A stretch of 64,000 bases of DNA, taken from Macrostomum lignano. Its lineage: Eukaryota. The position numbers and the translations under genes were made by a program. Shown here piece by piece: positions 7,546 to 62,468 of this stretch. A model generated the notes under the pieces. That model worked only from the letters and a program-made list of their open reading frames with translations. It searched no databases and was not told where the DNA came from. Within the stretch, counting starts at the first letter, position 1, and each line of letters opens with the position of its first letter. Location of the stretch: NCBI GenBank assembly GCA_002269645.1, contig NIVC01003488.1, forward strand, positions 1 through 64,000. Direction: 5' to 3'.

Positions 7546-16465
<8,920 letters not shown>

Positions 16466-19094: not shown

Positions 19095-21981
<2,887 letters not shown>

Positions 21982-26662: not shown

Positions 26663-33915
<7,253 letters not shown>

Positions 33916-39085: not shown

Positions 39086-40835
39086 TCCGCTCTCTCCTTC
39101 CTTGATCCGCCCTCTCCTTTCTCAACCCGCCCTCTCCTTCCTCAACCCGCCCTCTCCTTCCTCAACCCGCCCTCTCCTTCCTCAAACCACCCTCTCCTTC
39201 CTCGATCCGCCCTCTCCTTCCTCAAACCACCCTCTCCTTCCTCGATCCGCCCTCTCCTTCCTCGATCCGCCCTCTCCTTCCTCAAACCACCCTCTCCTTC
39301 CTCGATCCGCCCTCTCCTTCCTCAACCCGCCCTCTCCTTCCTCAACCCGCCCTCTCCTTCCTCAACCCGCCCTCTCCTTCCTCAAACCACCCTCTCCTTC
39401 CTCGATCCGCCCTCTCCTTCCTCAAACCACCCTCTCCTTCCTCGATCCGCCCTCTCCTTCCTCAACCCGCCCTCTCCTTCCTCAAACCACCCTCTCCTTC
39501 CTCAAACCACCCTCTCCTTCCTCAAACCACCGTCTCCTTCTTAGATTCGCCCTCTCCTTCGTAGATCCGCCCACTCCTTCCTAGATCCGCCCTCTCCTTC
39601 CTCAACCCGCCCTCTCCTTCCTCAAACCACCCTCTCCTTCCTAGATCCGCCCTCTCCTTCCTCAAACCACCCTCTCCTTCCTAGATCCGCCCTCTCCTTC
39701 CTCAAACCACCCTCTCCTTCCTAGATCCGCCCTCTCCTTCCTCAACCCGCCCTCTCCTTCCTCAAACCACCCTCTCCTTCCTCGATCCGCCCTCTCCTTC
39801 CTCGATCCGCCCTCTCCTTCCTCAAACCACCCTCTCCTTCCTCGATCCGCCCTCTCCTTCCTCAACCCGCCCTCTCCTTCCTCAAACCACCCTCTCCTTC
39901 CTCAAACCACCCTCTCCTTCCTCAAACCACCCTCTCCTTCCTCAAACCACCCTCTCCTTCCTCAAACCACCCTCTCCTTCCTCAAACCACCCTCTCCTTC
40001 CTCAAACCACCCTCTCCTTCCTCAAACCACCCTCTCCTTCCTCAAACCACCCTCTCCTTCCTCAAACCACCCTCTCCTTCCTCAAACCACCCTCTCCTTC
40101 CTCAAACCACCCTCTCCTTCTTAGATTCGCCCTCTCCTTCGTAGATCCGCCCACTCCTTCCTAGATCCGCCCTCTCCTTCCTAGATCCGCCCTCTCCTTC
40201 CTCAACCCGCCCTCTCCTTCCTCAAACCACCCTCTCCTTCCTCAAACCACCCTCTCCTTCCTCAAACCACCCTCTCCTTCCTCAAACCACCCTCTCCTTC
40301 CTCAAACCACCCTCTCCTTCCTCAAACCACCCTCTCCTTCCTCAAACCACCCTCTCCTTCCTCAAACCACCCTCTCCTTCTTAGATTCGCCCTCTCCTTC
40401 GTAGATCCGCCCTCTCCTTCCTAGATCCGCCCTCTCCTTCCTCAACCCGCCCTCTCCTTCCTCAAACCACCCTCTCCTTCCTAGATCCGCCCTCTCCTTC
40501 CTCAAACCACCCTCTCCTTCCTAGATCCGCCCTCTCCTTCCTAGATCCGCCCTCTCCTTCCTCAAACCACCCTCTCCTTCCTAGATCCGCCCTCTCCTTC
40601 CTCAAATCACCCTCTCCTTCCTCAACCCGCCCTCTCCTTTCTCAACCCGCCCTCTCCTTCGTAGATCCGCCCACTCCTTCCTAGATCCGCCCTCTCCTTC
40701 CTAGATCCGCCCTCTCCTTCCTCAAACCACCCTCTCCTTCTTCAACCCGCCCTCTCCTTTCTCAACCCGCCCTCTCCTTCCTCAAATCCACCCTCTCCTT
40801 TCTCAACCCGCCCTCTCCTTCCTCAAATCCACCCT
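39086..40835. repeat. 20-bp satellite (CTCAAACCACCCTCTCCTTC / CTAGATCCGCCCTCTCCTTC), ~87 units
   Basis: Direct tandem units. Confidence 0.98.
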
Positions 40836-42045: not shown

Positions 42046-45000
42046 TCATTCATCACCAGCATCGTCTTTGTACAGCACTAGCAGACAGGGCGACAGCTGC
42101 CTGGGATCGAACACCAGGTATTCCCTAGCCAAGTTATCGTCGCCTTTGTAAGCCGAACGGCCAGGACACAGCAGCGATTGGTAGCCGGCCGAGGGGCCGG
42201 CGCGGCCGCGGCAGGGCGACACGACGGTCTCGGTGGCGCCGAGGGCCGCCCAGACGAGGAGCAGCATCCCGGATGGAGCGTACAGGGCAGCCGTGAGCGG
42301 CGAGGGACTCAAATAGAAGCCTAAGCCGAATGCGCCCTGGCAAAGTGTTGCATTTTTAAAAGATAATGTTCATCGATTTTACGTCGCCTAAAATTTAAGT
42401 CTTACTAAAATAAGCGACTTTTGCCTAAAAATACATTAAAATGCTTCTTGTTTACTTTCTACTGAACTGCAAGTAGTTTACACGCAAATCTAGTTATTAT
42501 TTATATAGGTTGGTTGTAGCCTAGTGGTTACAGCGTCGGACTCACGACAGAAGGTCGGGGGTTCGATTCCCGGTCCCACTCGGAACAATTTGTGTCTTTG
42601 AGCAAGACACTTAACTCTGCATTGCTTCAGTTCACCCAGCTGTAAAATGGGTGCCAGCATTAGCTGGGGTAATTGAGGGTGTGTGTGGCGACCCCCCCTC
42701 CCCCCAGTCCTTGGACTGAACAGCCGTACGCAGCCTTCAGATGCGCTGCGCAATAGCTGCGGCTGAGCTGTCGGTTGGACATCTGGCCTCATTGGGGCAG
42801 GTGAAATCAATTATTAATATTCAAACTATCTGTAACTTCTTTACACGGCTAGTGAAGGGCCAGAGAGGGCAAGCAAGGTGCCCCTACCTGCTCCATGTGC
42901 TCAGCTCCGGTGAATCCGCGCTCTAGCAGAGCCTCGCAGGCCTCGGCCCGCCGTGGTCCGCACAGGTACAGCTGGGTGCACTGCGCGTGCTGCTGCTGCT
43001 GTTGCTGGCGCCACAACTCGGACAGAGCGGTCGCGGGTTCGCGCACCGCAATGACCCGGTGCCGACCATTCGGCGCCCGGGGATCGGAGTTCAGACCGCG
43101 CTCAATTCGCGCGGCAGCTTGGCGCCAGCGCGCTGGAACAGCCGGATCGGTTTTTTCTACGGTGGCGGCGCTCTCTGGCGCGTCCGACAGAGAAGCCGCC
43201 TTCTGAGGCCCGTCAGCTGCCTCGCCGCCTTCGGCACCGACCCCAGTCGCTAAGCGCAGCTGCTCGGTGAGCGAGCGAATCAGGTCGTCCCTGGACTGCA
43301 CCAGCAGGCGGAGATGGGCCAGCTCGTGGCGCATTCGTTCGAATAGAATTGTTTGGGAGTTTAGAGACTTAACCTGACAAATGCAAGTTGGGGATGGATG
43401 AGTGCGAGTTACGCATCGGCTTATATAGATAAGCACTGAAAACGCCTGGGGTAGTTAGTGGCGGCAACGATACTTAAAAAATTAGGAGGGTGGCGGCACA
43501 TCAAAGGACAGGAGTTATAGCGGCACCTCAAAGGATCGGGGAGGTATAGCGGTACATCAAAGGATCGGGGAGGTATAGCGGCACATCAAAGGATCGGGGA
43601 GGTATAGCGGCACATCAAAGGATCGGTGAGGTATAGCGGCACATCAAATGATACGAGTTATAGCGGCACATCAAAGGATCGGTGAGGTATAGCGGCACAT
43701 CAAATGATACGAGTTATAGCGGCACATCAAAGGATCGGGGAGGTATAGCGGCACATCAAAGGACCGGGGAGGTATAGCGGTACATCAAAGGATCGGGGAG
43801 GTATAGCGGTACATCAAAGGATCGGGGAGGTATAGCGGCACATCAAAGGATCGGGGAGGTATAGCGGTACATCAAAGGATCGGGGAGGTATAGCGGTACA
43901 TCAAAGGATCGGGGAGGTATAGCGGTACATCAAAGGATCGGGGAGGTATAGCGGTACATCAAAGGATCGGGGAGGTATAGCGGTACATCAAAGGATCGGG
44001 GAGGTATAGCGGTACATCAAAGGATCGGGGAGGTATAGCGGTACATCAAAGGATCGTGGAGGTATAGCGGTACATCAAAGGATCGGGGAGGTATAGCGGC
44101 ACATCAAAGGATCGGGGAGGGAGCGGCGCATCAAAGAAATCCATAGCCTCACCTGCTGAGCCCGATTAGCGAAGAACTGCCGTTCCATCTCCTTGGCTTC
44201 GAGCCGAGGCGAGTAGGTCAGGGCCGGGTGATCGGGCGCGAAGGCGGACCAGGGCGGGTGGTAGGACATGATAGTGCAGTTATAAAACTGATCAGCGAAC
44301 TCTTTCCATTTCTCGTTCATCACAGGGTCGGTGATGAAGCCCCAGCGGGCGAAGAAGGACACGGCGTCGGGATCGGCGTGGACAACCACAGCGGAGTGGC
44401 GGCCCACGATGGCGGGATCCTTGAGGCTGCGGAGCAGGGCGCTGCCCAGGCCAGCCCGGCGGAACCGAGATCGGACGGCCAGGAAGACCAGGTGGACGAC
44501 GCGCTCGCCCTCCACAGTTTTCAAATCGAAGGTGGCCGCCCCCGCGAGCCGATCCACAACGGCGGGGTTGGCGGCTTTGGCTTCATTGGTTGAGCTTTCT
44601 GGTGCGCCTTCTGTGGCACCTGGTTGGAGTTGGTTGGGGTTGATTGGAGTTGCTTGCTCTTGGTTGGAGTTGGTTGGAGTTGGTTGGTGTCGCTTGGAGT
44701 TGGTTGGCGTTGTTTCGAGTTGATTGGTGTTGTTTCGAGTTGGTTGGTGTTGCTTGGAGTTGGTTGGTGTTGTTTCGAGTTGATTGGTGTTGCTTGGAGT
44801 TGGTTGGCGTTGCTTGGAGTTGGTTGGTGTTGTTTCGAGTTGATTGGTGTTGTTTCGAGTTGGTTGGTGTTGCTTGGAGTTGGTTGGTGTCGCTTGGAGT
44901 TGGTTGGTGTTGCTTGGAGTTGGTTGGTGTTGTTTCGAGTTGGTTGGTGTTGCTTGGAGTTGGTTGGTGTTGCTTGGAGTTGGTTGGTTGGTGTTTGCGC

Positions 45001-48000
45001 AATGTACATGTTGGGCTGTTAGCCACCGAGTTTGACTGTGTACTTTCGAAGCCAGTGGACAGTGGGGTGTACTTTTGGACGAATAGCTGTGTGCATTCGG
45101 GCGAGTAAGGGTAGGTGTGTACTTCTGGCTTGAGCAGGAGTGTACTTTTAGAGAAAGTAGAGCGTGTACTTTTGGGTTTCAGGGTGGGCGGAGCGTGTTG
45201 GTCATTAGTTGATCAAGGCTGCTCAGATCCGCTCTAGCCATGCTGATGAGGCATCCGCCCAGCTCACCGTCAGCCGCCTTTATCCGATCAGCCGCTCGAG
45301 CCTCAAATTGAATTCGCGATTCCAGCTGCCGCCGGATGAAGCCGCGATAACCGACTGAGAAATCATCTTCATCATCATCGTCGTCCTCATCTTCCCATTC
45401 GCCGTCGCCGTCGCCACCGGTCTCGCCGTCCTCATCAGACGAGTAGAACTGCACAAAGTCGGAGGTTCGCTCCGGCTCTGGCTCAAAGTGGTCCAGCTCG
45501 GCCTCGTCTGGCGGAGTGTACTTTGCTAACAGCGGCACGTACAGGGCCTTGCGAGCCTGCGCCAGGGCCTCTCCGATTGGCTGAGGCTCGACCGCCGGGT
45601 CGCCAGATGCCGAACTATTAATCAGGCAGTTTCACGGACGGAGTGGTGCAACATGGGCAGGTACTCGGACACACAAGCTACTCTGAAGCAATAGATATCC
45701 CATTGATCCTTCACATCCCCCAGCTAGATAGCCAGTAGATATCCCGTTGATCCTTCACATCCCCCAGCTAGATAGCCAGTAGATATCCCGTTGATCCTTC
45801 ACATCTCCAAGCTAGATAGCCAGTAGATATCCCATTGATCCCCAAGCTAGATAGCCGGCAGATATCCCATTGATCCCCAAGCTAGATAGCCGGCAGATAT
45901 CCCATTGATCCCCAAGCTAGATAGCCGGCAGATATCCCATTGATCCCCAAGCTAGATAGCCGGCAGATATCCCATTGATCCCCAAGCTAGATAGCCGGCA
46001 GATATCCCATTGATCCCCAAGCTAGATAGCCGGCAGATATCCCATTGATCCCCAAGCTAGATAGCCGGCAGATATCCCATTGATCCCCAAGCTAGATAGC
46101 CGGCAGATATCCCATTGATCCCCAAGCTAGATAGCCGGCAGATATCCCATTGATCCCCAAGCTAGATAGCCGGCAGATATCCCATTGATCCCCAAGCTAG
46201 ATAGCCGGCAGATATCCCATTGATCCCCAAGCTAGATAGCCGGCAGATATCCCATTGATCCCCAAGCTAGATAGCCGGCAGATATCCCATTGATCCCCAA
46301 GCTAGATAGCCGGCAGATATCCCATTGATCCCCAAGCTAGATAGCCGGCAGATATCCCATTGATCCCCAAGCTAGATAGCCGGCAGATATCCCATTGATC
46401 CCCAAGCTAGATAGCCGGCAGATATCCCATTGATCCCCAAGCTAGATAGCCGGCAGCTATCCCAGCTCAGCCCTTACCTCTCCTCCTGCTGTTTCTGCAA
46501 TTTTTTCCTCTCAGCAGCCAGAGCTCTCTCTGCCCGCGCCTCAGCCGCTGCCAAAGCCTCCTCAGGCTCTCGCACAGCAACCAGACTGTAGGTATTATCC
46601 CCAGACACAGTCGAATAGATAATCTCAGTCTCCATGGAACCCAGAGCAACATCGTACAGCGCGGCGAGAGCGTGCACCAAATCCTGCGCCGGAATGCCGG
46701 CAACTTGACAAGCGGATTTAAATGTTGGATTTAGAAGCCGTTTAATATTGACCAGGTAAACTGAGAGCCGGTGACGCCCGGACGGGCCGTAAGGAACCGA
46801 CAGGTCTGTCAGACAGACCGCCGGCTGCCCAACCAGCAGCTGCTTGACGATGCCCTCCAGGTTGCGGCTGCTGCTTCAGCAGTAGAGAAACTGCAAATCC
46901 GATCAGTTTAAGCTGACAATGTTATCTAGATTTTCTATTTTTGTATGGCACCCTGACTATGGATCTTAAATTCAAAAATGTAATTTAGATTCAGACAATA
47001 AAACCTATAGCCCCCATGCAAGAAATATTTTCTCAGTATACTTTCTCAGGATACTACTAGAGACTAATGGAGACTAGTGGATACTAATAGAGACTAGTAA
47101 TAATAATAGGGCCAGATGTGCAACCGACAGCTCAGCCGCAGCTATTGCGTGGCGCATCTGAAGGCTGCGTACGGCTGTTCAGTCCAAGGACTGGGGGGTC
47201 GCCACACACCCTCAATTACCCCAGCTAATGCTGGTACTCAATTTACAGCTGGGTGAACTGAAGCAATGCAGAGTTAAGTGTCCTGCTCAAGGACACAAAT
47301 TGTTCCAGTGGGACCGGGAATCGAACCCCCGACTTCAAAGTTGTGAGTCCGACGCTCCAGTCAGGAGGCTACAAACCTCGCTACTAGATTACAGGATACT
47401 AATAGGGACTACTTGATACTAATAGGGACTACTGGATACTAATAGGGACTACAGGATACTAATAGGGACTACTGGATACTAATAGGGACTACTGGATACT
47501 AATAGGGACTACTGGATACTAATAGGGACTACTGGATACTAATAGGGACTACTGGATACTAATAGGGACTACTGGATACTAATAGGGACTACTGGATACT
47601 AATAGAGACTACTGGATACTAATAGAGACTACTGGATACTAATAGAGACTACTGGATACTAATAGAGACTACTGGATACTAATAGGGACTACTGGATACT
47701 AATAGAGACTACTGGATACTAATAGGGACTACTGGATACTAATAGAGACTACTGGATACTAATAGGGACTATTGGATACTAATAGAGACTACTGGATACT
47801 AATAGGGACTACTGGATACTAATAGAGACTACTGGATACTAATAGAGACTACTGGATACTAATAGGGACTACTGGATACTAATAGGGACTACTGGATACT
47901 AATAGAGACTACTGGATACTAATAGAGACTACTGGATACTAATAGGGACTACTGGATACTAATAGAGACTACTGGATACTAATAGAGACTACTGGATACT

Positions 48001-49547
48001 AATAGAGACTACTGGATACTAATAGGGACTACTGGATACTAATAGAGACTACTGGATACTAATAGAGACTACTGGATACTAATAGAGACTACTGGATACT
48101 AATAGAGACTACTGGATACTAATAGGGACTACTGGATACTAATAGAGACTACTGGATACTAGTAATTGCTACATTTTACAGCAAAATTTAGGCCTTAGAA
48201 AAGCTTATAACAATTTTCTTGGGCTTGTGGGTCTACAATAAAGTACATCATGTAGTTATTCACAATGAAAACATTGTAGATCAATTAGTTTATCTACAGC
48301 ATATTATATATCGCTATGGAAATAAATGTACAAAAAGAAACCCAATTAAAATCATTGTAGCAACATAATGAAAACGTGAAAATTAGTTCGATGCACATTT
48401 ATAATCAAATAGCACGCGCACTAGAAACTAGTTAAAGTAGCATAATTAAGCGGATAAATTTAATCTATAAAACCCCTGCATTAAGGATGCACTGCAGGTC
48501 AAGTATTAAAAGAGAAATTAAGTGCAGAACGAATTAGCGTACCAAACAACATATAAAAACAGAACTAAAAAGACAATGCCAGGACAACATAATATCGCTC
48601 TGAATTGCTTATACAATATTGAATGAATAACCAGCATCTCAAGAAGATTTTGATTGCTATATAAAAAACAGCTAGCTTATAAGGAAAGACACTGATAGAG
48701 TAATTAAATCGCGCAGAATGTAAGACAGAATTTCAATTCACGCGAAATATTATTGTGAAATTAAAACAAAACATTATTTTGTAGTTTCCAATGAGCCTAT
48801 CGCTTTGAAGTGCACAGAAGCCAAACTGTGTTGTCCAATAAAAAATTACCGAGTACTATCACATGGGCTATGACAGAACAAAAGACCAAACAGTAAAATC
48901 ATGCACAAATCTGTACAGTACACAACAGGTCAACATTATAACAAAGAAAAAAAGGTTTCTGTCGCATTGAATGTATAATAACATAGGGGTGCAATAAAGA
49001 ATATCAATCAGCTTTCAGTCATTCATTCGCATTGCACAGCTCAGTAAATGCACCGCTTTAACGCTTAGTGTAAGCTAGAATTCAGTTCGACCGCTTGCAT
49101 ACGTTTAGTACTGGTTATTATTAATTACCTGAGATCCTCAAACACAATTTGAAATCCCTAATCCTAATCCTGAAATTCTAAATCATGATATCAGATCCTC
49201 AATTACAATCTGAGATCCTCAATTACAATCTGAGATTCCAAATGACAATCTGAGATCCACAATGACAATCTGAGATTCCCAATGACAATCTGAGATCCAC
49301 AATGACAATCTGAGATCCCAAATGACAATCTGAGATCCCAAATGACAATCTGAGATCTCAAATGACAATCTAAGATCTTCAATGATAATCTGGGATCCCT
49401 AATGAAAATGAGATTCCTATTGTAGTATGAGATCCCTAAATCAGAATCTGTTATAATCCCAGATTTCGAGGGGGAGGAGAACGCAGCAGCTCACCAGTAA
49501 ACGCGCCTGACTCTCGTACCAGGACCCCTGCTTCGATTCCGTGCCAT
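42046..49547 (-). CDS. Uncharacterised ~680-aa protein: N-terminal domain, acidic linker, GCN5-like GNAT acetyltransferase, coiled coil, PARP-like (ART-fold) domain
   Basis: Exons (minus) 49547-49495 (tentative), 46873-46478, 45614 or 45682 to 45268, 44619-44153, 43373-42888, 42336-42046; phases match and total 2040 nt with the 45614 start. GNAT: VHLVFLAVRSRFRRAGLGSALLRSLKD...VHADPDAVSFFARWGF. ART: TQLYLCGP, GAFGLGFYLS, EYLVFDPRQLSPCLLVLY. Confidence 0.8.
42508..42790 (+). mobile_element. tRNA-derived CORE-type SINE, copy 1
   Basis: Pol III A box TAGCCTAGTGG (42517), B box GTTCGATTCC (42561), MIR/CORE-like TGTGTCTTTGAGCAAGACACTTAAC...CAGCTGTAAAATGGG; second copy at 47109-47377. Confidence 0.85.
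43490..44125. repeat. 29-bp minisatellite (AGGTATAGCGGCACATCAAAGGATCGGGG) filling an intron
   Basis: Direct tandem units. Confidence 0.95.
44625..44995. repeat. 20-bp minisatellite (TTGGTTGGTGTTGCTTGGAG) abutting the GNAT-exon acceptor
   Basis: Direct tandem units. Confidence 0.93.
45700..46460. repeat. 35-bp minisatellite (GATATCCCATTGATCCCCAAGCTAGATAGCCGGCA) filling an intron
   Basis: Direct tandem units, nearly invariant. Confidence 0.97.
47109..47377 (-). mobile_element. tRNA-derived CORE-type SINE, copy 2 (inverted relative to copy 1)
   Basis: Reverse complement aligns end to end with 42508-42790; A box degenerate, B box intact. Confidence 0.85.
47385..48160. repeat. 20-bp minisatellite (GGATACTAATAGGGACTACT)
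   Basis: Direct tandem units. Confidence 0.97.
49200..49420. repeat. 20-bp minisatellite (AATGACAATCTGAGATCCCA)
   Basis: Direct tandem units. Confidence 0.88.
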
Positions 49548-49910
49548 TCATTTGGGGCTTGTTCACACCCATTACCCATGAGGCCCAACCCCCAAGGCAT
49601 AGAGAGTGCACATGCCTGACGAATAGAAAGTCAGGGCCGCTGTACATCCTGTGTGAGCGTACAGCATTGGTGCACTTGTGTGTGCTCAGGAGTCAGTCGA
49701 ATGGGCGGAATTGCCTCAGCGACACGATGTCGCCGATGGCCCCAGATATCACAGATAGAAAGCAGATAGTGAACCGCAGTGACGCATTGAATTTCAGAAC
49801 TTTTCCGAATATTTAGGGCCAATCCTAACAAGTGATCCTGGGAAATCCCAAATCCTAGCAACAGATCCCAGAGACCGCTTCAGAGCCCTCTGGATCCCGA
49901 CTTTCTCCAT

Positions 49911-51434
49911 TCATCCGGCCGCGGCCGTCCGCCCAGACAAGTTGGCCCTGGCCACGGTGTAAACAGCCAGGCCAATAACAATGAGCACAACGGCCAGTAT
50001 GAGCAGCAGCAGAGCCCGATTCTGCACCACCCTGCGCAGCATGCCGCTCAGTATCCGACTGCTGGCGCCCAGATCCCTATCGGCGCCGCGTAGCCGGTCT
50101 CGGCCGCGCTCCAGCGTCTCCCGCTGTCCGGCCAGATCGGCCAGAATGGTCCGGCCAACTTGTTGAGTTGTTTCAACACTGCCAAGGCCTTCGTCGATAC
50201 GACGACCGGCACGTTCGAGACGTTCGGTATTGTCCAGCAGGCGGGTGCGGTAGTCGGAGGCCAGCTCGTCGTGGCGATGCTGCAGCGACTGTTCGGCCTC
50301 CGACAGAAGCTCGTCTCGATCCCGCTTGGCCTGGCCGGCCTCTCTGGCAGTTCAAATGAGGATTGGGGATAAATCAGTGGATCTAGGAGGATTCGTAACC
50401 CAGATGAGCTCTAGGAGTGGCGAGGGACCAAGATGAAGACCTGGGAGGATTGGGAAACCAAGATGAGGATCTGGGAGGATTGGGAAACCAAGATGGGGAT
50501 CTGGGAGGATTGGGAAACCAAGATGAGGATCTGGGAGGATTGGGAAACGAAGATGGGGATCTGGGAGGATTGGGAAACCAAGATGAGGATCTGGGAGGAT
50601 TGGGAAACGAAGATGGGGATCTGGGAGGATTGGGAAACCAAAATGGGGATCTAGGAGGATTGGGAAACCAAAATGGGGATCTAGGAGGATTGGGAAACCA
50701 AAATGGGGATCTAGGAGGATTGGGAAACCAAGATTGTGATCTGGGAGGATTGGGAAACCAAGATGGTGATCTGGGAGGATTGGGAAACCAAGATGGGGAT
50801 CTGGGAGGATTGGAGATTAAGATTGGGGATCTGAGAGGATTAGGGGTCAGGGAGAGTTGTGGGATCAAGATAGGGATTCGAGAGGATTGGAGATTAAGAT
50901 AGGGATCTGAGAGGATTTGGAGATTAATATGGAGATCTGGAACCATTGGGAAACCAATAGTGTTCTGGGAGGATTGATGGGTCAAACTGGGATCTGGGAG
51001 ATCGGGAGGATCTGTGAGTAGAGCGGCAGCACCCAGAGGATCAGTGAGTAGGGTGTGGGCCCCATTTACCTAGCCCGACGAAAATCCACCTCCAGTTTCT
51101 TGTGCTCGGCGGAATAGCTCTGCAGCCGGGTGGTGTACTTCTGCCTGAGCGATGGTGGCTGGCTTCGTATCTCCAGCTCCAGCTGTTCCAGGGTCTCCTT
51201 GGCCTCGGCAAACAGCCGCTCTGCTTGGCTAATAGTGGTCACTCGGTCATCTATAGATACACAAAAATAGTAAGTTATTGATTTTTGGACACAAGAATAG
51301 CAGACAATATATCTTATTTATTTATGTAAAGTGACCTCACCTGTACTTGATAGGTGACTAATCTGGTTAATTTTACTAGTTATCTCGGCTGTTGTTATGC
51401 CAAACTGCTGCTCATAGGTCTCCAGTAAGGACAT
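49911..51434 (-). CDS. VTI1: Vesicle transport Qb-SNARE VTI1 (VTI1A-like), 235 aa
   Basis: Exons 51434-51341, 51250-51070, 50343-49911 in phase (708 nt). Habc start LLETYEQQFGITTAEITSKI, ELEIRSQPPSLRQKY, SNARE motif RLLDNTERLERAGRRI...SSRILSGMLRRVVQNR, C-terminal TM. An in-frame upstream ATG exists at 51464. Confidence 0.95.
50420..50830. repeat. 30-bp minisatellite (GGATCTGGGAGGATTGGGAAACCAAGATGG) in VTI1 intron 2
   Basis: Direct tandem units. Confidence 0.93.
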
Positions 51435-52044
51435 TATATTGTCTGAAATACATTTAAATGCCATTTTATGTTTTACTATGCTGGGGTCTCTGAAATATCT
51501 ACTGCTGGCTCCAAATTTTGTTATTACAAGACTATAATTAATTTCTAAAGATAAGTTAGAATATTAGTCCGAGTGTTTCTTACTTTATACTGATAGCGTT
51601 CTTACTTATTATATACTTTATTCTATTTTATTATATGCCTAGAATTCCTTGCATATATTTCTTAGAATAAATCTTGTAAATATCTCTCAGTAATCTCAGT
51701 ATTTGATCATCTAGCTCTTGAGCATTACCAAGATTAGAGGTTCATAACTTTCTTAATACTAGATATATATAATATATATATATTCTTTAAGATCTACTTT
51801 GCTTTTTCTAATAATTGCAGCATTCTACTTATTAGTAGTATATCTCTACATGTAAAAATGAAAACTGTGTGTCCATCTATAGACATTTTGTTCGCTAAGG
51901 ACTCCCAAACTACTAAAACCAAATTACATTAAATTTTGCACCCACCCTAAACTCACTATGGAGAATATCATAGGCTACTTTTAAATTTCCGAAATTTGAG
52001 TCTTTCTACCTAAAAGTGCAAAAAACTGCTTAAAATGCGCGATG

Positions 52045-57706: not shown

Positions 57707-60700
57707 ATGGCCAACTCAGATTTACCAAGTTTCTACTCGGTGAGTGACTTTTTTAACACCACTAAGTCTCAGTTGTATTAATGACGCAATATTAGCCGTA
57801 ATAATATTCACAATAACAATTTTTTGCCAGCTACTGGGTGTGACGCAAGCTGCTTCCGAGGCGGAAATTCTGAGAGCTTGGCGCAAGCGAATGACGAACT
57901 ATCATCCCGACAAGGCTGGCAGCGAGGCTGAAGACATGGCCAAGCTTCTGAATCAAGCCAAATCTGTCCTGTGCGATAAAACCGAACGAATGAAGTACGA
58001 CGAACGTCGAGATGAAGCAACTGAGGATTACGAGAGTGGCGCTGATTTGCCTCGATTGCCAACTGGAAAGACACTATCGAAGGACCTCATGAGCAGAATC
58101 GCTGCTTGGAGGGAGAGTTCCGAGACGGCTCATGGAGCGCAATGCGACCCAAACGGATTCGCAAATAAGTTTTTCGAGGAAACTCGTCAAGCAGTTCTGG
58201 ATCTTCAGGAGAAGCTACGGGTTATTAAGAGGACGAGACGGTCAACTCTGCAAAGCCCGGTTTTTATTGAGAGTATCGCGTCAGGCGAGCTTTCAGAAGA
58301 ACATTTAGACGATGAAGTTCTCACCGAAGCCTGCAAATGGGCGAGAGAGACGCTAGAAAAAACGCTGAAAAGGAATACGCAGACGAAAGTTCCACCAGTT
58401 CAAGAAGGCGAACTAGTATGCTGCTATGACCTTTCCAGCTTGAAGGAAAGCGAATTGAGAAAACTCATGGTGATATTGATTCCTCCATCTGGCTCCAAGC
58501 CACTGTCAAGCGACCCCGAAAAGATGCGCCAAAGACTCAAAGATGTGTTACCCAAGTTTCGCGTCGACGTTAATAGAGAGAGAAGGGGTATAAAGAAGTT
58601 TTTCCTCGGTGCTCGTTGTGTGGTATGCAGTGCCGAGAAAGATTTATCCGAACGAAAATGCTTCCTTGTCGCAGGAGCCTGTCACGAGTTCAGACCTGTG
58701 TGTCTCACATGCTCTAAGCTTGAGTCCAAGAAGAGACTGCAGTTGTGGGAGGAGTTGGCAGCGACGCCTCAGACAGGATTTGTAGCTTCCTACGTGGCGA
58801 CAGGAATTGCAAGTATCGAAAGAATGATGCACAATCTGAAGATAAATCAGCCTAAGTCTGTGGTCGAAGCAACATTCGATCCTTCAATCGCTCTCACTAC
58901 AAAACTTTTTCTTGCTGCTTCGGCGCTGTGGCTAGCTCTACAGAAGTCTCAACGCAATGAGCATGACATTGAGTCACTGCAGAGCCGTCAAACTGAGCTC
59001 GTACTGGAAATTTCAGAAGAAAAAGATCCTGACCAAGAGCTGCGCTTGCTGTTACTCTTGGTAGAAAATGAAGAGTCTGCCTTGGAAAGTAATGAAAATT
59101 TTCGATCTTTTTTAACACAAGAAGAAGCCCGGCTAAAGCTGATAGTTGACTCGGCCGATCTGAACAACTCGATTCACATTGCGTTCTCACAGTCACCGAG
59201 AGACAGGTTGCTGCTACGCCAGGCTAGCAAGTCAGCTAAGCTGGCTGACGAAGCACTTGCTAAAGCGAAACTTGAGTCAAGAATTGTAGGTCTATTTCTG
59301 AGAGGTGCAGGGATCCTCAGCTGTTCAGGTGATGTAACAGCTCAACTCAGAGGTATGAAGGACCTCACACAAGCAGTGCTCGAAGGATACTCTGTCTTCT
59401 ACCACTCAGATTTGATATCATCTGTAATGCGTATTGTCTCTAGATTCGGAGCTCTTTGTGGGACATTTCCGGTTCATGCGCTGTTCCATTTAATCGATAA
59501 CCCATGGTCAGACTGCCAGGGAATGTTCAGTCGTCGGACTGCTTCGTCGGAAACACCAGCCAAAGCACAAGTCCCACTATTCCCAGGTATTTACGTACCG
59601 GGACACAGCGTGCAAGCGTTGAAGAAGAGCGAGATCGCTATCTCCAGAAGACTCGAAAAGGGCCAAATGACGCCACTGCAAGCGGCAATGAGCGCACTGG
59701 ACCTTGCCATGGCTTGCGAAACGCTTGCTGAGGTCCTCGCCTGTTTTCTTGAGTGTGTAGCTCTGCTTCTACGAGCTCTGGAAATAGAGGAGTCGCTCTA
59801 CCAGAGATATGCGCTCAAAGAAGCCATGTTTGAAATCGGGATCGCTTCAGTGAGCATTTGTCTCAACAACTTTTCCGATTCAGCTTTGTTAAACTATGTT
59901 TCGAGACACGCTTTTGCCTTGCTGAGAGATGCCGCTACGAAAGTTGGACGACCAGATGATGTTGAACGGCTCATTTCGATTCTAGAGATAGTAGCCTTCA
60001 CTGGTCGTTTCTCACCATTTGTGTCGCTGCCTCTGGTTCGTCCGTCTGAGTCGCTGGTATTTTCAAATGTGCTCAAAAAGTGCGCAGGTCAGCTTCTCTG
60101 TGGTTTGTCTCAGCCAGAAAATTCCTATTTTCTTGAACTACCGAAGAGTATCATAGCTTACCAGAGCTTGGAATACAGCATCAGCAGCTCTGCATTCACT
60201 GAAAGTGAGACACGCCAGCTTGAGCTCTTAACTGCACGTGAGATGCTTAGAGAGCAGAATCTGGACTTTAACAACGTAGCCGCCCTGATAAATCCATGCT
60301 ATCTTGACGTTCCAGAGGACGGTTGGCTTGTACCAAATCAGACACTTGATTTTTCAGGATGCGGAAACACGTATTTGAGCATTGACAAGGTCATTTTTAA
60401 CAAAAATACGTTTCAAATTTCTGTCGTGGGCAGCAAAGGGAATCTTGTCAGCGATTTCGATGTGCTGACTGGTCTGCTAATGGATCATCCGGGTGTGGCT
60501 TTTAGCCTTGACAAGCCCGCCAATCTTCACGAAGCTCGATTCCACCCGTTTCAAAAGTACTGGAGTAGCCAACCAGATCTGCTTAAAGGAACTCCACTCC
60601 TAGACACTCTTTTCAACACGGACTACATCATGAAGCAATTCAGTTCCGGATTAGAGATCTGCAGGAAGCCACCGTTCGATCGGAGACCATTGCTTAACGG

Positions 60701-62468
60701 TAGGGGTCTGTTCGCTGGACTGCCAGATCAGCTGCGCTGGCTGTTGAGACCTCTAAGCGAAAGAGGTGGGCAAAGATCTCGCTGCAGCAGATTCTGGATT
60801 GCAGCCACAGACATGGAGATGAAAGTGGAGGAAACACCTGACACGATTGAGTTCGTGTTTGGAAAGGTTCGCTTGGAAGTCAAAACGCACAGGATGGTAG
60901 CTTCAATGGGTGGCGAACACCAGGACGCTGAGACTGATGATGAAGATTCTCCAGAGAATCAGTTCGCAAAGGACATGACGGAGGCCCTTCCCAGCTTGGG
61001 TAGATTCTTTCCCGAGTTTGAAAGACTAAAAGAGCTAACAAAGATTCCGAAACTCTGCCTGATTATTAAGGCCATGCACCAAAGCCTCGGAGCAATGACC
61101 GTTCGCCAGGAGCAAGTAGAGCAAATTCTTGATCACGAACGAGCTGTTAGAATGGAAAAGAGTTATGAGATGGCGAAAAATGTTCTAGAGACACTGGATC
61201 GAGCTGAATCAATCCCTGGTGCAAGCCACTATGATTGTTGCAATCTGGCCACTGATCAATTGCTAAGCCAACTAAACTTAAATAAGACCGAGACTGTCCG
61301 TGCCTTGCGTAGGCGAGATGTCAGAACGCTCCAGTACCTGTTGGCTGACAGTCTGCCATCAAGCTCTGCTGCGGATGTTAGGCAACAAATTCAAGATTTG
61401 ATTGACTCGAAGAGAAGAGAATTTAGGAACTGGAACAGCAAGATACAGCATAAGTTAAATAGTAGCTTGCATCAGAGGCAACAGAAGATATCCGATTGTG
61501 ATTGGGCACCCGCAGTGCTGAGCGCTAGTTCGGACGCAACAACACGATCGACAGTATACGGCGGTGTCTTACTGAATCCCAAATCAGTGCATTCCAGTTT
61601 TCGTATGGAGTTTCCCCCGGGAAGCACCGTTCACAAGGTAGTATCATTTCTGATTCTCGGCGAACTGAATAGCAAGCAGTTCGCCTCCACGCGGACTTTT
61701 GACAGTTTAGATTTAGGGACTGTAAACGAACTTCTTGGGAATAATTTTCCCGAAATGGAGAGTTCCTCTGACTCAGAGCTGGGCGGACGTTCAGGCCGTG
61801 ACAATGAAGGCGCTACCAGCTCTGCTGACAACCAACCCAGAACATCTAAAAACGACCAGTTTTTGAATGATGAAGGAAACTGGTCTCACATCTTTTCTGA
61901 CAAGCCCGGCCATGTGGTTCCACGAAACGCAAAAGAAGAATGGGAGCTGCGAAAAAAACTTGTCAGTATTCGAGATCTGGCTCTCAAAAAAGATCCGAGG
62001 TGCATTGACGCTTCTCAGCAATTTGTGCACGTCGAGGGACGAAAAAATAATTGTCGATTTATCTTCTACAAGGTAAGAAAAGATGCCATTTAAGTTTTAA
62101 AAATGATTGACTTTAAAGATTATGAAAAAGAAAATTTTAATGCATCTATATTTTTTAACAATGGTAATTTCAAGGACGAGAGGGAGACAAGTAGCGACGT
62201 ACTGCACCTAGCCTGGTGGATAAGAATCGATGGAAACGGGCGCATCGTCGGAGCAGGCTGCAACACGGTCCTAGCCAAGGAGCGAATTCCACAGTTGTTT
62301 CTGTTCTTGCGACCCATACCAACTGGCGAAGCTTTGATGGCATTTTTTCTGAGGGAGAAGCATAAGCTTCATGGCAAGAAAACAGACGTGGAGTTTCATG
62401 ATCACCTAAGCACCATTCGGAAAGGTCTGATTAATCAAATTAATTTAGTTAATCAGATCAAACCATAA
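57707..62468 (+). CDS. Large J-domain protein (~1522 aa): DnaJ domain, Cys-rich finger, helical region, conserved unknown domain, toxin-like C-terminal domain
   Basis: Exons 57707-57739 (MANSDLPSFYS|GTGAGT), 57831-62072 (AAG|GTAAGA), 62175-62468; both introns phase 0 (91 and 102 nt). J-domain YSLLGV...YHPDK...LNQAKSVL...RMKYD; CVVC...CHEFRPVCLTC; 4.2-kb uninterrupted frame. Confidence 0.85.

Follow-up and report, generated by a model that had tools for sequence, protein, structure and literature searches.

The window analysed here is a 64,000-nucleotide stretch of Macrostomum lignano DNA (positions 1 to 64,000 of contig NIVC01003488.1, assembly GCA_002269645.1), and the gene in question is BOX15_Mlig018772g2 on its minus strand. 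Sequence comparison shows this gene to be a divergent member of an ancient, conserved eukaryotic family that extends from a glaucophyte to the coelacanth, and not a local chimera. The predicted polypeptide joins a split histone acetyltransferase (HAT) domain of the GCN5 type, a long helix and a C-terminal PARP-like domain with an ADP-ribosyltransferase (ART) fold. The new element is the undescribed combination of a GCN5-type HAT with a PARP fold that carries an unusual x-Y-E site; both fold types were already known and are visible to Pfam in the orthologues. The presence of a GNAT domain, a helical segment and a PARP-type fold in one chain had been proposed in a first-pass annotation of the window and is borne out by the exon model, by profile comparisons and by 36 relatives with the same domain order.

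The three exons at 44619-44153, 43373-42888 and 42336-42046, which the first-pass annotation had placed in phase, join into one open frame of 413 codons that ends in TGA. Each is preceded by AG, each non-terminal one is followed by GT, and together they form the last three of five annotated exons. Because the exon at 44619-44153 starts in codon phase 2, upstream exons are needed. A five-exon model with GT-AG borders gives a translation identical to the NCBI entry 'hypothetical protein BOX15_Mlig018772g2, partial' (656 amino acids, 5'-partial), and in a scan of alternative exon boundaries a single GT-AG model reproduces this protein exactly. The spliced length of 679 residues given earlier could not be reproduced. 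The public annotation of M. lignano is derived from RNA-seq and transcriptome assemblies and not from ab initio prediction (PMC5730564). The features of the gene are listed below in the direction of transcription.

Exon A, 46857-46478, minus strand: residues 1-126, 5'-partial; N-terminal half of the GCN5-type HAT fold and the start of an inserted long helix.
HAT N-terminal half within exon A, ~residues 27-97, window 46779-46567, minus strand: strand LSVYLVNIKRLL, helices DLVHALAALYDVALGSMETEIIYSTV and strand YSLVAVRE.
Exon B, 45614-45268, minus strand: residues 127-242; insertion in the HAT domain, with a helix, an acidic disordered run (TSDFVQFYSSDEDGETGGDGDGEWEDEDDDDDEDD) and a helix toward the C-terminal half.
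Exon C, 44619-44153, minus strand: residues 243-398; C-terminal half of the HAT domain (residues 263-365) and start of the long helix.
Features of exon C: strand β4 VVHLVFLAV with His285 (44494-44492); motif R296-R-A-G-L-G301 (44461-44444); VVVHADPDAVSFFARWGF; the GCN5-specific segment NEKWKEFADQFYNCTIMSY.
Intron C/D, 44152-43374, minus strand: minisatellite of 29 nucleotides in 22 copies at 43493-44136.
Exon D, 43373-42888, minus strand: residues 399-560; remainder of the long helix, disordered linker 442-478 and first half of the PARP-like domain.
Feature of exon D: LYLC536G (Cys codon 42962-42960) at the His-Gly position of the PARP H-Y-E triad.
Intron D/E, 42887-42337, minus strand: divides the PARP-like domain; holds an element of ~210 nucleotides at 42582-42793 that resembles a short interspersed element (SINE).
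Exon E, 42336-42046, minus strand: residues 561-656 and TGA; second half of the PARP-like domain.
Features of exon E: GAFGLGFY568L (Tyr 42315-42313), LTA576ALY579, GYQSLLCPGR and ARE632YLVFDPRQLSP (Glu 42123-42121); Ala576 is at the position of PARP1 Ser904 and Tyr579 at that of Tyr907.

An exhaustive HMMER/phmmer search over 1.84 billion representative proteins recovered 180 relatives at E≤1e-3, of which 26 reach E≤1e-30. Many have a length of 600-730 amino acids and an alignment that runs from the N-terminal region through to the final residues. Both domains occur in the same order in 36 of the top 150 representatives, and another 34 have the two HAT halves and the helix without the PARP-like domain. 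The chordate members come from Branchiostoma, the shark Pristiophorus and Latimeria, and the echinoderm members from the starfish Patiria, the sea cucumber Holothuria, the sea urchin Diadema and the crinoid Antedon. Gastropods and a chiton (Haliotis, Plakobranchus, Babylonia, Liolophura) represent the molluscs. The family is also found in the sea anemone Actinia (Cnidaria), the ctenophore Pleurobrachia, the trematodes Calicophoron, Dicrocoelium and Paragonimus, the holozoan Pigoraptor and the glaucophyte Cyanophora. Five orthologues, Latimeria XP_014351554 ('SI:DKEYP-50B9.1'), Branchiostoma XP_078573734, Patiria XP_038068410, Actinia XP_031568080 and Cyanophora tig00020592_g11638, share the four-part layout and the same substitutions with the Macrostomum protein, at identities of 31-37% and E values of 1e-57 to 1e-16. 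The Macrostomum protein has every part in family order: N-terminal half of the HAT, acidic insertion with an FSD-type motif, C-terminal half of the HAT, a helix of ~60 residues and a PARP fold without the triad His.

All named relatives are labeled 'uncharacterized', 'hypothetical', 'unnamed' or with a generic automatic acetyltransferase name (N-acetyltransferase domain-containing, RimI-like, GNAT superfamily); for the Latimeria protein, NCBI gives the zebrafish gene name si:dkeyp-50b9.1. The earlier statement that no named protein combines a GNAT with a PARP domain agrees with this result, since the relatives are uncharacterised and the literature searches returned no such protein. An ortholog family does exist, but it is not the characterised one that the first-pass annotation had set as a refutation. 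Full-text literature searches for an architecture of acetyltransferase and PARP returned nothing relevant, two evolutionary surveys of PARPs (one of them PMC2964712) do not mention an acetyltransferase partner, and no expression data for Mlig018772 were found in three M. lignano papers. A word-indexed homologue search returned the gene itself and one paralogue-like model, and nothing for the C-terminal 177 amino acids or for the ART profile; the family came to light solely through the exhaustive search. No tetrapod is present among 30 named representatives, and no search aimed at tetrapods was made.

In the three trematodes and the crinoid Antedon, the proteins stop after the long helix and lack the PARP-like domain, whereas the free-living Macrostomum keeps a divergent copy. 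The repetition of this pattern suggests real loss in these lineages. By this comparison, the acetyltransferase and helix appear to be the constant core of the family and the PARP-like domain a losable accessory.

In the Macrostomum protein, the acetyltransferase part matches Pfam Acetyltransf_10 (E=6e-8, 33 bits against a curated cutoff of 23.6), and its nearest solved relatives are Tetrahymena GCN5 and then human GCN5. In exon C, these Pfam and Protein Data Bank (PDB) matches extend over no more than the second half of the GNAT fold. The N-terminal domain of the family, encoded here by exon A, is also conserved (...VIVDFRRLL...GV.N.DLLHAVVALYDV.LP....LY.TVC....TI.L.RD). When this region and the C-terminal half were concatenated into a profile of 20 family members and searched against the PDB, one continuous alignment to residues 22-158 of Tetrahymena GCN5 was obtained (E=4e-16). 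The N-terminal part of the profile lies on α1-α2-β2 of GCN5 (kniFsrqLPkMPkeYivklvfdrhhesmvil). PCAF and KAT2A/B follow at ~2e-11, from profile position 20; the first 13 matches are all GCN5, KAT2A or KAT2B, and the next family is NAA50 at 1e-6. On this profile evidence, the HAT domain of the family is specifically GCN5-like and interrupted between β2 and β3. A separate N-terminal domain of unknown function was also considered and rejected, as the profile search shows the N-terminal half of the GCN5 fold. With the N-terminal 190 residues modelled alone (mean predicted local distance difference test, pLDDT, 80.9), Foldseek returned nothing significant (best E=0.05); the Gcn5 chain of ctSAGA was at rank 49, with the highest probability listed, 0.35. 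The alignment of the GNAT domain to the GCN5/PCAF HAT core described in the first-pass annotation therefore stands as to type, but the three exons on which it was based hold only the C-terminal half, and the N-terminal half lies at 46857-46478.

The full protein was modelled with AlphaFold2 (AF2) from a 42-sequence alignment, with a mean pLDDT of 83.9. In this model, exon A is predicted at a pLDDT of 83-96 from residue 11 and of 66 for residues 1-10. The insertion of ~165 residues (98-262) consists of a long helix, an acidic disordered run and a further helix, with a pLDDT below 50 at residues 189-207. Across the family it carries a motif of the form F-x-x-x-F/Y-S-x-D/E (F-x-x-V-F-S-D-S/T-E/D; F-A-D-V-F-S-D-S-E-E in most animals). 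In Macrostomum the motif reads FVQFYSSDED, at residues 181-190 (window ~45450-45425), and its serine, S185, is invariant in the 42-sequence alignment. This hydrophobic-then-phosphoacidic pattern presumably resembles phosphorylation-dependent SUMO-interaction motifs.

The cofactor and catalytic positions of the HAT domain differ in how well they are kept. The acetyl-CoA pyrophosphate motif A (Q/R-x-x-G-x-G/A) is present in Macrostomum as R296-R-A-G-L-G301, and across the family its first position is R or Q in 120 of 123 sequences, its fourth is Gly in 89 of 124 and its sixth is G or A in all 124. The position of the general-base Glu in β4 of GCN5 (E173 in yeast Gcn5, E122 in Tetrahymena GCN5) is occupied by His285. 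Across the 137 acetyltransferase domains examined, it is Gln in 45, His in 32, Asp in 16, Tyr in 8 and Glu in only 4. The pairing of EIVFCAI with HLVFLAV noted at first is sound as an alignment, but it places a His at the catalytic Glu position of GCN5.

Relative to GCN5/PCAF (KAT2A/KAT2B and the yeast and Tetrahymena Gcn5 proteins), the family aligns from α1 to the GCN5-specific C-terminal segment (EKWKGYIKDY..TLM versus NEKWKEFADQFYNCTIM) and keeps both R/Q-x-x-G-x-G and 'YADN.A..FF.K.GF'. It differs in the replaced Glu, the acidic insertion, the PARP fusion and the lack of a bromodomain and a PCAF-homology region, and it is not a KAT2 orthologue. By Pfam, no bromodomain was detected in the Macrostomum protein or the tested orthologues, and no PCAF-homology region in the Macrostomum protein.

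C-terminal to the HAT domain, the AF2 model contains a single unbroken helix at residues 380-441 (62 residues, pLDDT ~90), which includes LFERMRHELAHLRLLVQSRDDLIRSLTEQL. Family members share the conserved helix (AYQAQ..C..R..HE...L), and a linker of low confidence comes after it at residues 444-472. In a crude heptad count, 12 of 18 a/d positions are hydrophobic, which is moderate. The coiled coil previously predicted at this segment does lie in a long predicted helix, although its heptad pattern is only moderate; dimerisation through a coiled coil formed by this helix is plausible.

The Macrostomum PARP-like domain is too divergent to be recognized readily on its own. Against Pfam PARP (PF00644), the sequence alone reaches E=0.016 and 15.2 bits, below the cutoff of 26.7, and a phmmer search of its ART region alone against the PDB gave no match at E≤10. 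In the orthologues, which are less divergent, Pfam PARP is found at 31-45 bits in seven of the eight tested, with the coelacanth slightly below the cutoff at 26.5; those tested also match GNAT models. When 21 C-terminal domains (20 orthologues and Macrostomum) were combined into an ART profile, the best PDB match was tankyrase-1 (E=8.6e-13, positions 5-162 of 165), followed by PARP3, ZAP/PARP13 (E=6.5e-12 for ZAP), PARP4, PARP10, PARP12 and PARP1/2. Residues 520-651 of the Macrostomum protein score 106 bits against a profile of the 20 orthologous domains from which Macrostomum was excluded. The AF2 model agrees with this assignment. Residues 479-651 are mostly predicted at a pLDDT above 90, lower in two short stretches. 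By Foldseek, the model matches tankyrase catalytic domains (E=1.4e-8, probability 1.0, target-normalised TM-score (TMt) ~0.65) and the C-terminal domain of ZAP, which has the highest target-normalised score (TMt 0.72). On these profile and model comparisons, a PARP fold of a minimal, tankyrase-like form is regarded as established for the C-terminal domain.

The catalytic residues of this fold are only partly retained, as judged from 47 family PARP-like domains. At the triad His position, Cys (24), Gly (8), Ser (5) and Ala (4) are found and His never (0/47); the Macrostomum residue is Cys536. Of the other two triad positions, the Tyr (Tyr568) is retained in 44 of 47 and the catalytic Glu (Glu632) in 41 of 44. 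The position of the nicotinamide-anchoring Ser (PARP1 S904) is Ala in 44 of 45, including Ala576 in Macrostomum, and that of the stacking Tyr (PARP1 Y907) is mostly Phe in the family and Tyr579 in Macrostomum. The equivalence to S904 and Y907 of PARP1 is one that we take from the tankyrase alignment. The pocket features, namely G-x-G-x-Y-F, the invariant Ala, the Glu and Q..P, are strongly constrained. Of the PARP motif order reported in the first-pass annotation, the fold, the FGxGxYF-type loop, the Tyr and the Glu hold, but the supposed LFHGT is LYLCG, with Cys in place of His. In addition, GYQS stands in the Macrostomum domain at the place of the family's G(F/Y)DS.

Among solved proteins, tankyrase-1/2 and PARP3 are the best whole-domain matches, with the Tyr and Glu in register and with the family segment 'SK.A.QF' parallel to 'SKSNQY' of tankyrase; a further shared feature is a minimal domain that lacks the helical regulatory subdomain. 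Unlike in these enzymes, the His of the family domain is replaced by Cys, Gly, Ser or Ala and its Ser by Ala, and ankyrin and SAM domains are absent. With the pseudo-PARP precedents ZAP/PARP13 and TASOR, and with LRRC9-like ARTs, the common feature is a PARP fold without the canonical triad; in contrast to these, the family retains the Tyr, the Glu and a highly conserved pocket, and the partner domains differ. LRRC9 has been proposed as a conserved pseudo-ART (PMC7955679). A Pfam scan of the orthologues gave no DUF3715/TASOR match. The land-plant clade 1D PARPs (plant PARP3) have a Cys-Val-Glu triad, in which the effect of Cys for His is described as unclear (PMC2964712). They resemble the family in the Cys at the His position and the retained Glu. 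Unlike the family, they belong to the PARP1 clade, carry WGR and regulatory domains, have also lost the Tyr and have no acetyltransferase domain.

The reading that we moderately favour is that of an acetyl-CoA-binding, probably active GCN5-type acetyltransferase joined by an oligomerising helix to a non-canonical PARP-like module, which would be ligand-binding or weakly catalytic and regulatory. The acetyltransferase module would still bind acetyl-CoA, because R/Q-x-x-G-x-G/A and the GCN5 core 'AD..A..FF...GF' are conserved, and acetyl transfer is probably retained without the glutamate general base of GCN5 (His here; Gln, His or Asp elsewhere). Because no member keeps the triad His and the nicotinamide Ser is Ala, the PARP-like domain is unlikely to be a canonical NAD+-using PARP; given the strong constraint on the pocket, it is read as a ligand-binding or a weakly, atypically catalytic module. 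It would regulate or target the acetyltransferase half and would not be an independent writer of poly- or mono-ADP-ribose. Oligomerisation or the binding of partners is the probable role of the long helix.

Several observations weigh against this reading or the model beneath it. An active ADP-ribosylating enzyme would be expected to keep the PARP Glu and Tyr as this family does, from glaucophyte to vertebrate, and the missing general base may equally mean that the acetyltransferase half is inactive. Truncated gene models could account for the members without a PARP-like domain. Whatever is said of structure depends on the AF2 model. Finally, a TGA at 46878-46876 closes the reading frame of exon A and no ATG precedes Met74, which bears on the start codon of the gene model.

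A rather unlikely alternative is a true dual writer, as first suggested for this protein, that acetylates with acetyl-CoA and ADP-ribosylates with NAD+ through a non-canonical C-Y-E site. The strong conservation of the triad Tyr and Glu, the G-x-G-x-Y-F loop and the Q..P strand is in its favour, as are the conserved acetyl-CoA motif and the fact that the closest solved relatives, tankyrase and PARP3, are active H-Y-E enzymes. However, the His is missing in 47 of 47 domains, 44 of 45 have Ala for the nicotinamide Ser, the general base of GCN5 is mostly replaced by Gln, His, Asp or Tyr and the PARP-like domain has been dropped in some lineages; canonical chemistry is therefore unlikely. ZAP/PARP13 also lacks the canonical triad and is considered inactive. 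PARP9, without both His and Glu, is reported to be inactive (PMC2964712).

Doubtful to a similar degree is a double pseudoenzyme, in which both folds would serve without catalysis as binding or scaffold modules, for example as readers of ligands related to acetyl-lysine or ADP-ribose or of partner proteins. In its favour, both domains have lost canonical catalytic or cofactor residues, the best structural matches include ZAP (TMt 0.72), and pseudo-PARPs have precedents in ZAP and TASOR. Against this stand the near-invariance of motif A (G/A in 124 of 124), the retention of the GCN5 core motifs for more than 1 billion years and the nearly invariant residues of the PARP-like pocket; the near-invariance of motif A and the pocket suggests that ligands are still bound.

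An annotation artefact, in which neighbouring GNAT and PARP-like genes were wrongly joined across repeat-filled introns, is very improbable: the introns are long and carry minisatellites and a SINE-like element, transcript support is known here through the published annotation and the gene model is 5'-partial, but no fewer than 36 representative proteins, drawn from many phyla, share the domain order, the orthologue alignment is unbroken across both exon junctions (C/D and D/E), every splice site is canonical and keeps the phase in a transcript-derived annotation, and the helix and the first half of the PARP fold are encoded together in exon D, which argues against two genes. A chimeric gene model was likewise rejected on the conserved layout across relatives.

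Beyond the favoured reading of an acetyltransferase with a regulatory PARP-like module, a more speculative and, on balance, improbable possibility is a metabolite-coupled modifier of chromatin or protein. The retuned PARP pocket would bind an ADP-containing ligand (NAD+, ADP-ribose, O-acetyl-ADP-ribose or CoA), or perform atypical ADP-ribosyl chemistry through the Glu, and would gate or cooperate with the GCN5-type acetyltransferase in the same oligomer. If true, the pools of acetyl-CoA and NAD+ would be linked physically and directly, perhaps in the germline. Zebrafish si:dkeyp-50b9.1 has been reported as one of the 25 genes with the strongest up-regulation in male-like juvenile gonads, beside sycp3, hormad1 and dmc1. 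With orthology presumed from the NCBI naming, this expression is a weak lead toward a germline role.

Acetylation, which uses acetyl-CoA, and ADP-ribosylation, which uses NAD+, are major modifications of protein and chromatin with known crosstalk through separate enzymes. This family would hard-wire a GCN5-type fold to a PARP fold, in a link kept from glaucophyte algae to fish. Its absence from human and mouse, if true, would explain why it was overlooked. It offers a natural experiment in which a PARP pocket has lost the His and Ser and kept the Tyr and Glu, and it indicates that the GCN5 fold can tolerate a 165-residue insertion together with loss of the general base. As M. lignano (transgenesis, RNA interference) and zebrafish (presumed orthologue) each have a member, the function is directly testable.

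At the gene's 5' end, the residues upstream of Met74 are conserved family sequence. The region 46880-49900 was examined for an upstream coding exon and holds only repeats, a SINE-like element and AT-rich sequence. The spliced leader of M. lignano terminates in ATG (PMC8629364), and the suffix '.g2' in a locus tag of this species denotes the second gene of a transcriptional unit (PMC5730564). One further feature is proposed on this basis.

Candidate spliced-leader trans-splice acceptor AG, 46856-46855, minus strand: exon start at 46854, with the leader ATG as start codon and a product beginning M-GIVKQLLVGQPAVCL...

Among the five AGs at 46850-46895, only this one sets the leader ATG in a frame that is open through exon A; it lies 3 nucleotides from the annotated start of the coding sequence, and the resulting start resembles the N-termini of orthologues. 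The leader ATG is out of frame at the three best-looking acceptors (46867, 46870 and 46873), which were rejected. We hypothesize from these positions that BOX15_Mlig018772g2 takes its start codon from the spliced leader at 46854. The in-frame acceptor and the '.g2' tag also suggest that the gene shares an operon-like unit with its upstream neighbour, a v-SNARE gene. This Vti1-like gene (~49900-51500, minus strand; Pfam V-SNARE E=2e-11 at 51066-51242) is the next gene upstream of exon A on the same strand, with ~3 kb of repeats between them.

Repeats are prominent in and around the gene. Three consecutive introns each hold a minisatellite of their own, with matches of 87-99%: a 35-mer in 19 copies (45803-46464), a 20-mer in 18 copies (44621-44988) and the 29-mer listed above. 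Comparable arrays occupy much of the window, for example at 40000-40835 and 47390-48000. The SINE-like element of intron D/E has a second copy at 47105-47306, a short way upstream of exon A; the two are inverted and 95% complementary. Were both transcribed, pairing between them across exons A-D of the pre-mRNA would be possible. ARAGORN found no tRNA in the element. A Macrostomum-like model of 450 amino acids in MetaClust, 85% identical over matched stretches, contains frameshifted and intron-derived segments and probably represents a wrongly predicted paralogue or allele, the genome being partly duplicated.

Other genes were also observed in the window. A gene for Maelstrom, of the PIWI-interacting RNA pathway (28369-33915, plus strand; Pfam Maelstrom E=8.5e-13 at 28369-28998), converges on the 3' end of BOX15_Mlig018772g2 and has a large intron filled by a tandem repeat. 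On the plus strand at 57744-62093, an unbroken open reading frame (ORF) of 1449 codons has an N-terminal DnaJ domain as its sole Pfam match (E=2.6e-13), the other ~1350 residues being without a family match. ORF pieces at 9919-16465 on the plus strand resemble eyes-absent (EYA) by eye, with the C-terminal piece at 15992-16465, and gave no Pfam match for the two fragments tested. An ankyrin-repeat ORF lies at 21397-21981.

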